Sequence record: MZ622713.1
Direction: 5' to 3' (one strand)
Length of the DNA: 64,000 nt
The stretch's first letter is position 1, and each line of letters opens with the position of its first letter. Positions 12,429 to 62,268 of this stretch are shown piece by piece. Both the position numbers and the translations under genes were made by a program. Below the pieces are notes generated by a model. It saw only the letters and a program-made list of their open reading frames with translations, had not been told where the DNA came from and ran no database searches.

Positions 12429-12484
12429 ACATACAGATTATTTCAAGTCTATATAGTCTAGGTGTATAAACATAGGTATATACA
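12429..12484 (+). promoter_or_regulatory. Early promoter cassette, copy 1
   Basis: 52 of 56 bases identical to 60932-60987; core TTTCAAGTCTATATAG resembles the phiKZ early TATATTAC element. Confidence 0.75.
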
Positions 12485-12524
12485 AAACCATTTAATTTAA
12501 TTAACCTTTACTAAGGACACTATC

Positions 12525-12869
12525 ATGGAAATTTCAAAAACTAACAAAGCACGCATCGCATCTGGTCTAGCAACAGTAGCAAACGTAGCAATCGCTGAGA
12601 AACTATTTGAATCTCACGGCATTGCAGGTTACCACTTGATCTCAGGTGGTCTACATACAGCTACAGTGAAAGTTAGAGAAGAAGATGAGTTCACTACTAA
12701 AGATGCTGTTGTCTACGGTCTATGTCAAGTAGCTGGCGGTACAGCTGCCTCTGCACTATTCAAAGGCATCGGTAGCTTGTTCAGCAAATCTGAAGAAGAT
12801 GAAGTTGACACTGACGAGATCAACCAAGTGATCACAGAAGTTACTGGATTAGAAAATCCAAACGCATAA
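12525..12869 (+). CDS. Small early protein with Gly/Ala-rich hydrophobic segments and acidic tail
   Basis: Stand-alone gene with its own promoter, AAGGA RBS and terminator; KDAVVYGLCQVAGGTAASALF resembles the 61019 product. Confidence 0.8.
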   Translation: MEISKTNKARIASGLATVANVAIAEKLFESHGIAGYHLISGGLHTATVKVREEDEFTTKDAVVYGLCQVAGGTAASALFKGIGSLFSKSEEDEVDTDEINQVITEVTGLENPNA

Positions 12870-39328: not shown

Positions 39329-39382
39329 TTACATGAAACTAATCCCAGTTTCTAATCATTAACCTTAATAAGGAACACCACC

Positions 39383-45183: not shown

Positions 45184-45214
45184 TGTTCACACCTATATTA
45201 CTTGGGTGTGAACA
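45184..45214 (+). promoter_or_regulatory. Early promoter with an exact TATATTAC inside a 10-bp inverted repeat
   Basis: TGTTCACACC-TATATTACTTG-GGTGTGAACA, followed by the shared leader CTAACCTTTAATAAGGAACACC. Confidence 0.75.
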
Positions 45215-45249
45215 ATCCATATATCTAACCTTTAATAAGGAACACCATC

Positions 45250-47473: not shown

Positions 47474-47776
47474 TTGAACGTACCTGCTATCTTAGGTGCT
47501 GCTTTCGGTACTGCTATTACTGGTTTTACTACCGAGGACACCAAGATGACTTTATTAGGTGCGGCCACGGGACTTATTACCGTGGGTATATTGGACTCTG
47601 TGAAAAGTGAGAGTGAAGCTCTTCCAAGTACCAGAGATTTTTGTACGTCAGCATGTGCTTCTATTTGGCCTGTATTGATCTATGAAAAACCTCAGGATTA
47701 CATCCCATATTACTTTGACGATGAAATTCCATTTGAAGGTGAGGATATCTTAGATATGCCTCTGACTTTTGAATAA
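47474..47776 (+). CDS. Small protein with N-terminal Gly-zipper-like segments and acidic tail
   Basis: TTG start with a strong GAGGAGG RBS; ILGAAFGTAITG and LLGAATGLITVG. Confidence 0.7.
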   Translation: MNVPAILGAAFGTAITGFTTEDTKMTLLGAATGLITVGILDSVKSESEALPSTRDFCTSACASIWPVLIYEKPQDYIPYYFDDEIPFEGEDILDMPLTFE

Positions 47777-52423: not shown

Positions 52424-53035
52424 ATGAAAGAGTTAATTGAAAAATACCAACGTTTAGTGATTTATAGACAATCATTGATTATGTTAATAGCGGCTCCTGT
52501 TCCAGCAGCGATGATTAAGTTGCAAGGGGAGTTGTTGAATGAACAAACTATCGCATTGATAATAATACTGGGTAATTTGTTTTCGATGTGTGGAACTCAG
52601 TTAAATAAACTAAGTACTAAATTGTTGTTCATAGGTGGTAATGTGATTAGTGTGATTGCTGTACTAGGGATAGTGATGATGTATTTAGGGGAAATAGGGA
52701 ATAGTGTTATAGTGGTCTATTTTCCGATAGTGTCTTGTATGGGTTTCTTATTAGTTGGATTAGCATCAGGTCAAGTGAATGATGCAATGAAAAATAAGTA
52801 TAAAGAAGAATTTGATATAAGTCACTATAATGCTAAGAAAGCGTCATTTGCAAGTGCAGCTATGGTGATGGGTCAAGGAATTGCTTTGGTGTTTTATAAC
52901 TTAGTGGATGTGGATCCAATTATGGTTTTGTTGTTTTTAGAAACTGTGAATTGTGTTTTGTATCTGATTGCTGAGATAAACAGGTGGGGTTTAATTAAAG
53001 AGATGGAATTAGAATTAAAAGAAAGTAGAATATAA
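52424..53035 (+). CDS. Multi-pass membrane protein, about 6 TM helices, resembling half of an MFS transporter
   Basis: Six hydrophobic segments by eye; very C-poor atypical composition; own promoter and terminator. Confidence 0.7.
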   Translation: MKELIEKYQRLVIYRQSLIMLIAAPVPAAMIKLQGELLNEQTIALIIILGNLFSMCGTQLNKLSTKLLFIGGNVISVIAVLGIVMMYLGEIGNSVIVVYFPIVSCMGFLLVGLASGQVNDAMKNKYKEEFDISHYNAKKASFASAAMVMGQGIALVFYNLVDVDPIMVLLFLETVNCVLYLIAEINRWGLIKEMELELKESRI

Positions 53036-59096: not shown

Positions 59097-60092
59097 ATGA
59101 TTGAGTTTAAACACTTTGATCAAGCTGAACTAATAAACGCGATTATTTATCGTACTCAAAAATCAATTAAAGACTTGAGTTACATGGGTAATAGCGGACG
59201 CATCAAAGAACTAATTTGGGATTTGTATCCGTTTACCAGTGATCTTTATCGTATCCCTCAAACGGTGTATGAAGTTAAAGGTGGTTACATCACAGTGACC
59301 TACCCTCAAACGGAAGACGAACTCTTTAAGTTCAATAAAGAGCCTTCTATCTATTTTTATGCATCCGCTGAACCTAAGATCGTTTATTCGGAAACAATCC
59401 CACTTGGTTATATACCGTGTACACTAAATTCAGGTTACTTTAAACTATTGACCCGAATTTATCTAGGCGAAGAAAACATCGGTTACCCAACCATGGCGGA
59501 AAGTGATATTGACTTCCCTATCATGGGTCCGTTACGTTTAGTGACTAAAGATTCAGAAGAAGTGTTCTACGCACTGTACACTTATGGTTTTTGTGGGAGT
59601 AAATTAGAACACAAAAATCAAGGTACCGTGTGTTCTATGGTTAAGCGTGACCCGGGTAAACCTGATTACCAAATCATGGCTTATCTGGAATCAGCACGAC
59701 TAGCTACCATACTGGCTCAAAATCCAGTGGCTAACGTAGCCAGAGAAATACTAGCCAAGTGGTTTGCTAAACCTCGTTTCCCTGCCTATGGTCGTACTAT
59801 CACCACAGTCAAGGGTATCTCACTTAATTACCCATTCGATCAAAGAGCGCTTATCGCACTCTACAACCATGAGGTGGATTATTTATCCGAGCTTGACGTT
59901 AAGCTTAACGGTTATCCGTTATCAGAAAATACGCCAACTGTAAGTGGTTCGAATAACATCCCTGCGGTGAAAAACATCAGTCAGAATTTGTTAGTCGAAC
60001 AAATTAATGTCTTGCGTAAACGTTTGGATTTACCACCTGTTGAACCAATTTGGTCACCAAATGGTGATCTCTCTGCCTTAGAGGAAATGTGA
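59097..60092 (+). CDS. Hypothetical protein
   Basis: GAGG RBS; 331 aa. Confidence 0.75.
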   Translation: MIEFKHFDQAELINAIIYRTQKSIKDLSYMGNSGRIKELIWDLYPFTSDLYRIPQTVYEVKGGYITVTYPQTEDELFKFNKEPSIYFYASAEPKIVYSETIPLGYIPCTLNSGYFKLLTRIYLGEENIGYPTMAESDIDFPIMGPLRLVTKDSEEVFYALYTYGFCGSKLEHKNQGTVCSMVKRDPGKPDYQIMAYLESARLATILAQNPVANVAREILAKWFAKPRFPAYGRTITTVKGISLNYPFDQRALIALYNHEVDYLSELDVKLNGYPLSENTPTVSGSNNIPAVKNISQNLLVEQINVLRKRLDLPPVEPIWSPNGDLSALEEM

Positions 60093-60879: not shown

Positions 60880-60930
60880 ATAACCCTACCTCCTTGACGG
60901 GGGTAGGGTTATGTTTGTTCTTTATTTTTT
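60880..60930 (+). terminator. Rho-independent terminator
   Basis: ATAACCCTACCTCC-ttgac-GGGGGTAGGGTTAT followed by a T-rich tract. Confidence 0.8.
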
Positions 60931-60931
60931 T

Positions 60932-60987
60932 ACATACAGTTTATTTCAAACCTATATAGTCTAGGTGTATAAACATACGTATATACA
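60932..60987 (+). promoter_or_regulatory. Early promoter cassette, copy 2
   Basis: 52 of 56 bases identical to 12429-12484; core TTTCAAACCTATATAG. Confidence 0.75.
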
Positions 60988-61018
60988 TAATTCATTAACC
61001 TTAATAAGGAATACTATC

Positions 61019-61510
61019 ATGTCTAACAAATCAAACAACAAAGCTGTAAACAACAACGATCAAGCTACTTACACAGAAGAGTTTGAAACACCGGTAACTT
61101 CTAAAGCAGAAGAAGTCGCTGCACAGTTGCTAAGCCAAGCTAAAGAGATGATCGACTCAGGTGAACTTCCAGCGGAAGAAACCGAAGAAGAGGGTCGTAA
61201 AGAACTACCTCTTAACTTTTATGCTCTAGCTGGCGGTCTATTAGGCGCTGGTGTTGGTGCGGTTCCAAACCGCTCAGTATCTGGCCTATGTGCTGGTGCG
61301 ACTGCGGCTACGGTAACATCGTACTGCATGAAAGATAAAGAACGTGAACCTGTTAAAGATGCCGCTCTAGGCTTCCTAGCAGGATTTGGTGCGAGTGCTA
61401 CAGTGAACGTAGCAGTTGCTATGTTAACGGGCGAATCAGAAGTTGAAGACGATTCTGATGATGTAGTCCAAACAATCACAGTTATCCAAACTGAAACAGT
61501 AAGTGAGTAA
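61019..61510 (+). CDS. Glycine-zipper small protein with acidic termini
   Basis: ATG at 61019 with AAGGA RBS; LAGGLLGAGVGA and ALGFLAGFGAS. Confidence 0.8.
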   Translation: MSNKSNNKAVNNNDQATYTEEFETPVTSKAEEVAAQLLSQAKEMIDSGELPAEETEEEGRKELPLNFYALAGGLLGAGVGAVPNRSVSGLCAGATAATVTSYCMKDKEREPVKDAALGFLAGFGASATVNVAVAMLTGESEVEDDSDDVVQTITVIQTETVSE

Positions 61511-61513
61511 GTT

Positions 61514-61816
61514 ATGAGTGAATCAAAAAATAATGTCATCTACATCGATGGCGCATCTCTAGGTGGTGGTTTCATCGGTTCAGCAGTTGGCGGTTTGCTA
61601 ACTAATTCTAGCGCTGGTACAATTGCAGGTCTTACTGCATCTGTACTAGTGAGCGTGTCTGACGAACCTATCACATCAGAAGAAGACAATACGTACATGC
61701 GTACTGCTCGTGGTTTCTTTGCTGGTCTTGCAACATCAAGTGCAACTGGTGCGATCATCAACAAACTGATGAGCAAAGACGAAGAAGATGACTCCGACCA
61801 AGTAGTCCAAGCTTAA
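61514..61816 (+). CDS. Glycine-zipper small protein, paralog of 61019
   Basis: LGGGFIGSAVGG and ARGFFAGLATS; shares an EDDSDxVVQ tail. Confidence 0.8.
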   Translation: MSESKNNVIYIDGASLGGGFIGSAVGGLLTNSSAGTIAGLTASVLVSVSDEPITSEEDNTYMRTARGFFAGLATSSATGAIINKLMSKDEEDDSDQVVQA

Positions 61817-61821
61817 TAATG

Positions 61822-61877
61822 AAGATGAGGATGTTATGGGTGAAAGCCTGTAACATCCTTGTCATCTTTATTTTTTT
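61822..61877 (+). terminator. Rho-independent terminator
   Basis: AAGATGA/GGATGTTATGGG...CCTGTAACATCC/TCATCTT stem followed by a T-tract. Confidence 0.75.
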
Positions 61878-61902: not shown

Positions 61903-62268
61903 ATGAGCATTGAAGTCGTACCTCACCCGATTCCGTTTCTTAAGGAAGCGTTGACTCTGGGTGATCTAGAAGACTTTAAACCACGACTGAAAAAGTTATT
62001 GGTTAAAGAAAACATCCCTAATGATTTCGAGCACTCGGAGTTAGAGATGTGTAAAACTGTGCTTTACGATAAAGGCTGGTACCGCGGAGACGCGGAACTT
62101 ACACATGATGTCAGTGTCGTTTTCTTGTGGTGGTATGAACTAAGTGGTGGTCGTGAGTTATTCATGAAACGCGCTTATGATCACTTCCATTTGCTAGGTG
62201 ACTATAATTTCAAATTCTTCGGACATCTGGACGCTTTATACCAAACCTACGAAATCATGAAAAAGTAA
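61903..62268 (+). CDS. Hypothetical protein
   Basis: AAAGGT RBS before the ATG at 61903; the upstream ATGs fall inside the terminator. Confidence 0.7.
   Translation: MSIEVVPHPIPFLKEALTLGDLEDFKPRLKKLLVKENIPNDFEHSELEMCKTVLYDKGWYRGDAELTHDVSVVFLWWYELSGGRELFMKRAYDHFHLLGDYNFKFFGHLDALYQTYEIMKK

Follow-up and report, generated by a model that had tools for sequence, protein, structure and literature searches.

Tandem genes for small glycine-rich, three-helix proteins behind an early-type promoter in the nucleus-forming Vibrio phage phiKT1019: a Gorgonvirinae family of candidate early membrane proteins

The 64,000-nucleotide stretch of DNA analysed here (the window) is 100% identical to Vibrio phage phiKT1019 (MZ622713.1, 238,840 bp) and shares its coordinates. 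phiKT1019 is a published nucleus-forming phage in which ChmA has been localised experimentally (PMC10587174), and its relatives are the Gorgonvirinae (Aphroditevirus and Tidunavirus). Near the end of the window, two adjacent genes, referred to here as A and B and both annotated in the record as hypothetical proteins, form a compact unit with the following features:

60880-60930, + strand: terminator of the upstream operon, a hairpin (60880-60912) with a 14-bp stem, and a T-run
60932-60967, + strand: early-type promoter of A and B, consisting of an upstream element ACATACAG and a 24-nt core TTTCAAACCTATATAGTCTAGGTG (core at 60944-60967)
60968-61018, + strand: 5'UTR of A, unstructured and part of a repeated cassette, with the RBS TAAGGAA at 61005-61011
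61019-61510, + strand: gene A, 163 aa
61514-61816, + strand: gene B, 100 aa
61824-61877, + strand: terminator of the A/B unit, a hairpin (61824-61863) with 18 pairs, and a T-run

Only 3 nt separate the stop codon of A from the start codon of B, and the two products share 35% identity over 86 aa (BLASTP, E 2e-11). Both also match the same PHROGs family, phrog_24719 (A, E 6.5e-10, residues 10-145; B, E 5.3e-8, residues 4-93); the fast divergence of the family keeps these matches modest. Together, the pairwise similarity and the common family identify A and B as true tandem paralogs, as the preliminary description of this DNA had proposed. Two antisense ORFs (61219-61539 and 61540-61776), which are not annotated in the record, were taken as shadows of the Gly/Ala-rich frames, and the flanking genes at 60092 and 61903 have PHROG matches solely to families of unknown function.

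The same description had assigned A and B to a promoter-to-terminator unit of their own with a high-expression codon bias, and both points were borne out. Besides the promoter motif, the unit is delimited by two strong terminators, in which the upstream hairpin folds at -24.2 kcal/mol (z -5.2; none of 200 shuffles folded equally well) and the downstream hairpin at -29.2 kcal/mol (z -7.8). By the same kind of folding, the 5'UTR of A is without structure (-1.7 kcal/mol, z +0.76), and an Rfam search over the A/B unit gave no match. With the ten most biased genes as the reference set, the codon adaptation index (CAI) of A falls in the 95th percentile and that of B in the 93rd, values that suggest that both are probably translated efficiently; the gene chmA marks the extreme of the main codon-usage axis of this genome. 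A codon-usage PCA rank for A (120 of 213) was dropped in favour of the CAI, owing to a too-long GTG ORF and to heavy pseudocounts on short genes.

The core of the A/B promoter is one copy of a genome-wide 24-nt motif, TTTCAaaCCTATATaatCTaGGTG. In phiKT1019, a weight matrix located 25 copies of this motif, each of them on the + strand and shortly before a gene; the A/B copy, with a score of 35.6, ranks third among the 25. Each of four related genomes carries 19 to 22 copies at orthologous places, nearly all of them on one strand, the sole exception being a low-scoring copy in pTD1. The motif stands upstream of chmA, of the gene for an RNA polymerase beta subunit and of a GroEL-like gene; chmA itself, at 222814, is wrongly annotated as a diguanylate cyclase and was recognised by its match to phrog_4795 (E 6e-186). 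Jumbo phages that encode polymerases of their own have, near -10 of the early promoters read by the virion polymerase, a conserved AT-rich motif (PMC7598289), and the chmA gene of phiKZ is transcribed early and in dependence on the virion RNA polymerase (vRNAP; PMC12571901). The 24-nt motif is, against this background, very probably an early, virion-polymerase promoter, and because it is common to chmA and an RNA polymerase subunit gene, A and B are probably early genes, their timing being deduced from the promoter class; the preliminary description, which had called them early, gains support to this extent. The sequencing runs listed as containing this DNA were all metagenomic DNA.

The A/B promoter further belongs to a repeated cassette of about 100 nt that comprises promoter and 5'UTR and occurs in four copies in the genome (12425, 60915, 155218 and 166294; 80-84% identity). 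One of these copies precedes the gene at 12525, and the proposal that this gene and A/B have a cassette in common holds, as exact copies of the 25-mer TATATAGTCTAGGTGTATAAACATA lie at 12450 and 60953 and nowhere else in the window (expected, 0). Across the two genera, promoter and 5'UTR are 75-84% identical in DNA sequence, as against 22-44% identity for the proteins, and the coding parts of A and B are unrecognisable at the DNA level. The upstream element ACATACAG was found at five promoters (12441, 60944, 155244, 166316 and 227738), all of which drive small proteins; three of the five serve helical proteins (the 12525 protein, A/B and the product of a gene at 166386), and the proteins behind the other two have a hydrophobic, membrane-anchor-like segment at their start or end. 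When the first genes behind all 25 motifs were considered, proteins with uncharged runs showed no enrichment (4 of 25 vs. 19 of 200, P 0.30).

Two further genes in the window had been described as related to A and B, and they are named here by the coordinate at which they start:

12429-12524, + strand: second copy of the cassette (core 12441-12464), 80% identical to the A/B copy over 91 nt, motif score 33.8
12525-12869, + strand: 12525 protein, 114 aa, phrog_24498, with a layout similar to that of A and B and the acidic tail DTDEINQVIT
47474-47776, + strand: 47474 protein, 100 aa, phrog_30612, without a cassette of its own, encoded by the last gene of an operon behind an early-type motif at 45185

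The claim of kinship could be upheld only in part. A hidden Markov model (HMM) of the A/B family recovered the 12525 protein with E 4.5e-4 among about 5,600 ORFs, but the profile-profile alignment, which covers helix 3 and the acidic tail, reached a probability of 23%, and 3 of 100 local shuffles scored as high. For the 47474 protein, the profile-profile alignment with A/B reached a probability of 72%, with none of 100 shuffles as high, but it spans the N-cap, helix 1, the turn and helix 2 only, the reversed-sequence control scored 24.8 against 33.5 for the real sequence, and the A/B HMM gave E 0.31. In codon usage, the 12525 gene resembles A (CAI in the 95th percentile), and the 47474 gene is average (54th percentile). 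Outside the window, a cassette copy precedes a gene at 166386 that encodes a look-alike of A and B; homology of this look-alike to them was rejected, since its hhalign score lies at the shuffle mean. The families of the 12525, 47474 and 166386 proteins are each single-copy and kept in all five genomes (5/5), and in reciprocal HMM searches the families ranked first after self, although without significance. Judged by these profiles, the 12525 protein may be a distant paralog of A and B, and a common origin of A/B, the 12525 protein and the 47474 protein is possible. By architecture, there is a clear class: of 225 ORFs scanned genome-wide, A, B, the 47474 protein and the 166386 protein were the only ones with at least two uncharged segments rich in small residues. 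The idea of an expanded family accordingly retains the weak profile signal in its favour, while the kinship of its proposed members is borderline and that of the 166386 protein fell away.

The distribution of the A/B family itself is sharply bounded. Relatives were located by synteny, since tblastn against phage records gave few of them, because of low-complexity filtering. An exhaustive profile search, which replaced a word-indexed search (four proteins) in which low-complexity words had saturated the candidates, scored 1.84 billion cluster representatives and returned 15 matches, all with the same layout, the identifiable ones of which come from these vibriophages; the family HMM found no match in the genomes of phiKZ, OBP and SPN3US. 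The family is limited to the Gorgonvirinae and is among the fastest-evolving 4-10% of the shared genes. In comparisons with four relatives, A and B either lack a reciprocal hit or rank, by identity, at the 4th to 10th percentile of the reciprocal best hits, and the median identity of the genes that phiKT1019 shares with these relatives is 59-74%. At this genomic slot, most phages carry two genes, and Aphrodite1 and USC-1 a single one. A tree of the family has two well-supported clades and places the B-type genes of both genera together, a topology that tentatively suggests, given the long branches, old paralog lineages with differential loss.

That A and B belong to no described family, as had been stated, agrees with all searches conducted. 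Searches of Pfam, NCBIfam and PDB sequences returned nothing above threshold, the best NCBIfam lead for A being the SdpC toxin family (E 0.022, 14.7 bits vs. a cutoff of 99.2 bits), and the PHROGs family has no function attached. Fold searches with the model of B stayed within the noise of helical bundles (best E 0.67 against AFDB clusters and 2.3 against the PDB; VIA-align, wide, Z 6.1), and the ESM Atlas gave a feature score of 0.79, to be read as a lead only, and listed holin clusters at TM 0.46-0.55.

The architecture of the proteins was derived from an alignment that began with 13 proteins encoded at the A/B slot of seven phages and grew to 19 sequences, which are 20-40% identical. The family plan opens with an acidic, variable N-terminus; a T-(R/N/K)-S turn then joins helices 1 and 2, and an acidic loop that ends in K/R-D leads to helix 3 and an acidic tail, often with DSD(D/E)(V/I). 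In A, a disordered acidic N-terminal part precedes helices at residues 67-81, 87-106 and 111-136 and an acidic tail with DSDDVVQ; B has no long N-terminal part, and its helices (13-30, 33-47 and 60-93) are followed by the acidic tail DDSDQVVQ. AlphaFold predicts three helices with disordered tails for both (overall pLDDT of 77.5 for B, 78-90 for the core of A). The helix cores consist almost wholly of Gly, Ala, Ser, Thr and aliphatic residues, and the uncharged stretches of the three helices extend over about 13, 16 and 19 columns, nearly every one of which contains zero D, E, K, R, N, Q, H or P across the 19 sequences. The helix columns with the lowest entropy are Gly or another small residue at i, i+4 and i+8 (alignment columns 92/93/96/100, 109/113/117/121 and 145/149/153/157), and the columns with large hydrophobic residues are variable. 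This pattern of conserved small and variable large positions fits tight packing of helices with lipid-facing aliphatic residues, and would be a poor fit to a water-exposed bundle.

Two of the more specific claims about these helices, i.e., that they carry glycine zippers and that the proteins insert into membranes, were confirmed in some respects and weakened in others. B has more strict glycine-zipper motifs than composition-matched shuffles (9 vs. 4.0, P 0.02); in A the excess is weak (6 vs. 3.1, P 0.10), and there is none in the 12525 and 47474 proteins. With regard to membrane insertion, the uncharged helices with conserved i, i+4 glycines speak in favour, whereas marginal hydrophobicity, a positive insertion energy and the acidity of the proteins speak against. 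The Kyte-Doolittle means over 19 residues are 1.0-1.7 for the A and B helices (up to 1.8 in relatives). Summed roughly on the translocon scale, their insertion free energy amounts to +3 to +7 kcal/mol; by comparison, two predicted membrane proteins of phiKT1019 reach 2.5-2.9 and about -4 to 0 kcal/mol, respectively, in their strongest segments. In addition, helix 1 is free of charge over a short stretch only (about 13-16 residues), A is strongly acidic (28 D+E vs. 11 K+R), the net charge of the proteins ranges from -8 to -17, and neither A nor B shows a clear positive-inside pattern. Sub-threshold matches are mostly to membrane proteins. A predicted complex of A (residues 60-152) with B obtained a score of 0.00 and a fold confidence below 50, values that weigh neither for nor against such a complex. 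The absence of charged residues from the helices makes a host membrane the most likely seat of A and B, a placement that we consider somewhat more probable than not.

In the reading that we prefer, and to which we give about an even chance, A and B are made early and in quantity, lie embedded in a membrane, probably assemble together, and serve as accessory proteins directed at the host or at rival phages. According to this model, A and B would be co-transcribed from one of the strongest copies of the early promoter, read by the virion RNA polymerase, and would become embedded in the host inner membrane or in the derived membrane that encloses the injected genome. There, small-xxx-small contacts between helices would mediate their packing or oligomerisation, probably of A with B, and the two would serve an accessory role, e.g., by blocking a second infection or by disarming a membrane-linked defence. 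An accessory role is likelier than that of a core replication part because the family is confined to one subfamily, is present in one or two copies and diverges fast.

A and B might instead be soluble or peripherally attached acidic mini-bundles, with large hydrophobic residues in the core and an uncharged surface of Gly, Ala, Ser and Thr that would bind to a host protein and so block it. They would then be decoys, inhibitors or mimics of nucleic acid, as many acidic early proteins of phages are. We regard this as unlikely, even though it would account for the marginal hydrophobicity, the positive insertion estimate, the net charge and the long disordered acidic tails; moreover, large hydrophobic residues make up about 35-40% of the helix residues, which suffices for a three-helix core, and no significant fold or family match ties A and B to membrane proteins. 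What weighs against a soluble bundle is that charge is excluded from about 50 helix positions in 19 sequences, which would be hard to explain if these positions were solvent-exposed, that glycine, a residue that destabilises exposed helices of soluble proteins, occupies the most strongly conserved positions of the helices, and that the weak matches lean towards membrane segments. If the proteins do sit in a membrane, they could form an ion-conducting pore, similar to a small viral channel or a holin, that depolarises the host early and acts in host shut-down or as a toxic element. Three helices with a charged C-terminal tail are the layout of class I holins, glycine zippers are reportedly over-represented in channel-forming helices, and the ESM Atlas holin clusters, the SdpC lead for A and a holin PHROG hit of the 47474 protein (E 0.044) point in the same direction; however, every one of these matches is below threshold, no lysis-gene context is evident between flanks that match PHROGs of unknown function, and an early collapse of the membrane potential would harm a phage that needs about 1 h of host metabolism, so that we consider a pore quite improbable.

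A more central function, with A and B as core components of the early vesicle or of the hand-over of the genome to the chimallin nucleus, would be in keeping with a promoter of the chmA class that is among the top three matches to the consensus, with the very high codon adaptation, and with the presence of a protein of the same layout in OBP. Confinement to one subfamily and very fast divergence nevertheless argue against a core role in the early vesicle: the exhaustive profile search places the family in this phage group alone, phiKZ, OBP and SPN3US yielded no detectable homolog and phiKZ no protein with the signature, and variable copy number together with fast divergence is unlike what is seen in conserved core genes. 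We therefore hold this possibility to be very improbable. A broader reading, which we put forward as a distinctly improbable speculation, is that small, fast-evolving, three-helix glycine-zipper proteins driven by the strongest early promoters are a recurrent class in nucleus-forming jumbo phages and represent the phages' own membrane components. In that case, they would act on the genome vesicle or close the inner membrane to a second injection; they might do so, for example, by pairing with uncharged, glycine-rich stretches in a giant protein (2335 aa) encoded at 136686-143693.

Nucleus-forming phages spend the first minutes of infection in a lipid vesicle made from host membrane. Host membrane proteins as well as injected phage proteins have been reported from this early vesicle (bioRxiv 10.1101/2024.03.24.586471), and in the literature consulted, no membrane protein synthesised de novo by a phage was ascribed to it. 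As the promoter class of the nuclear shell also drives A and B, and at top strength, the two proteins are candidates for phage-made early membrane factors. They are likewise candidates for superinfection exclusion in phages that are used against shrimp pathogens, or for counter-defence, and if soluble, they would still represent an unusual fold class of charge-free helices between acidic tails. The preliminary description stands for the most part, and the functions that it suggested (vesicle remodelling, a change in membrane potential, a block to superinfection or counter-defence) are guesses. A and B constitute a real, well-delimited feature and a family without an assigned function, rather than a demonstrated system.

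Among catalogued families, phrog_24719 is the A/B family itself, in an entry that carries neither function, structure nor expression. The Pfam Gly-zipper families PF13488, PF13441 and PF13436 did not match A, B or the 12525 protein, and the 47474 protein matched PF13488 with E 0.49 (10.8 bits vs. a cutoff of 25 bits); these families are mostly domains of outer-membrane lipoproteins with signal peptides, which A and B do not have. The small stress membrane proteins GlsB/YeaQ/YmgE resemble A and B in size and in the possession of three glycine-rich helices, but A and B gave no Pfam hit to them and a Foldseek probability of 0.23 (E 5.4); the GlsB/YeaQ/YmgE proteins are much more hydrophobic and have no acidic tails. 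Class I holins, as small proteins with three helices and a charged C-terminal tail, are weak structural look-alikes; A and B differ from them in having an early-type rather than a late promoter, weaker hydrophobicity and no evident lysis-gene neighbourhood, and neither A nor B matched a holin PHROG, the hit of the 47474 protein noted above being to phrog_1299. Among phages, an OBP protein (228041-228496, 151 aa) has the same layout as A and B; it was rejected as a homolog (profile probability 3%), and its likeness may reflect convergence or divergence beyond recognition, while the filter that detected it found no protein with the A/B signature in phiKZ. T4 Imm and Sp are small early superinfection-exclusion proteins that act at the inner membrane; PHROGs shows no sequence relation of A and B to them, and the accessory, fast-evolving character is comparable. 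Finally, the over-representation of glycine zippers in channel-forming helices is said to go back to Kim et al. in PNAS in 2005, and like transmembrane glycine-zipper helices, A and B have a conserved small-xxx-small spacing in all three of their helices.

Twenty-five gene starts in the phiKT1019 record, 25 of 25 on the plus strand, are marked by the 24-nt early-type motif TTTCAaaCCTATATaatCTaGGTG, which is kept at orthologous sites in the four related phages.

4850, 12441, 39312, 45185, 52377, 53096 and 60944, plus strand: 24-nt motif sites in the window
18 further positions, the last at 237870, plus strand: 24-nt motif sites in the rest of the record
222814-224883, outside the window: gene of chimallin, the nuclear shell protein (chmA; phrog_4795, E 6e-186)

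Copies of this motif lie ahead of chmA, an RNA polymerase beta-subunit gene and a gene for a GroEL-like protein, so the motif probably serves as the early promoter in the phiKT1019 phage group. The record labels the chmA gene "diguanylate cyclase/phosphodiesterase"; given its phrog_4795 match, this label is wrong.

A start context, AACCTT(T)A(A/C)TAAGGA with an ATG a few bases on, is common to several early genes and its recurrence suggests a favoured strong ribosome-binding module.

12505-12524, 39356-39378, 45226-45249 and 61000-61018: sites of the start context
52424-53035: 203-aa protein, strongly hydrophobic in several segments, downstream of an early-type motif
61903-62268: 121-aa protein (phrog_26115), the gene after the unit formed by the paralogous genes A and B

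Pfam and PHROG searches returned no match for the 203-aa protein. The phrog_26115 gene begins 26 nt past the T-run of the terminator of the A/B unit and has no early-type motif of its own; its transcription must occur by read-through or from another promoter class.

The promoter cassette, comprising promoter and 5'UTR, also drives genes elsewhere in the record, and the family profile built from A and B gave a weak match to a giant protein.

136686-143693, minus strand, outside the window: 2335-aa protein (A/B profile, E 0.49)
155218-158565, outside the window: third cassette copy and a row of six genes (products of 157-231 aa)
166294-166649, outside the window: fourth cassette copy and its driven gene (87-aa protein, phrog_32693)

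In all six products of the row, a hydrophobic segment resembling a membrane anchor lies at the N-terminus or close to it; the row looks like an early operon for membrane-anchored proteins, which are possibly paralogous. The 87-aa protein, kept in all five genomes, has three uncharged segments rich in small residues, lacks an acidic tail and shows no detectable homology to A and B. The giant protein contains four uncharged Gly/Ala-rich runs of 16-27 residues each, and a 2433-aa ORF of OBP matched the profile comparably weakly.

With regard to known systems, the protein encoded at 47474-47776 ends in DDEIPF...DILDMPLTFE, with DILDMPLxF present in all orthologs. This acidic, then hydrophobic tip is reminiscent of the DDDIPF tail at the C-terminus of bacterial SSB and might be a docking motif. 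In phiKZ, the composition filter used for A/B-like proteins found only one small glycine-zipper protein.

phiKZ 276191-276604, minus strand: 137-aa glycine-zipper protein

This protein has a signal-peptide-like start and is similar to outer-membrane glycine-zipper lipoproteins.
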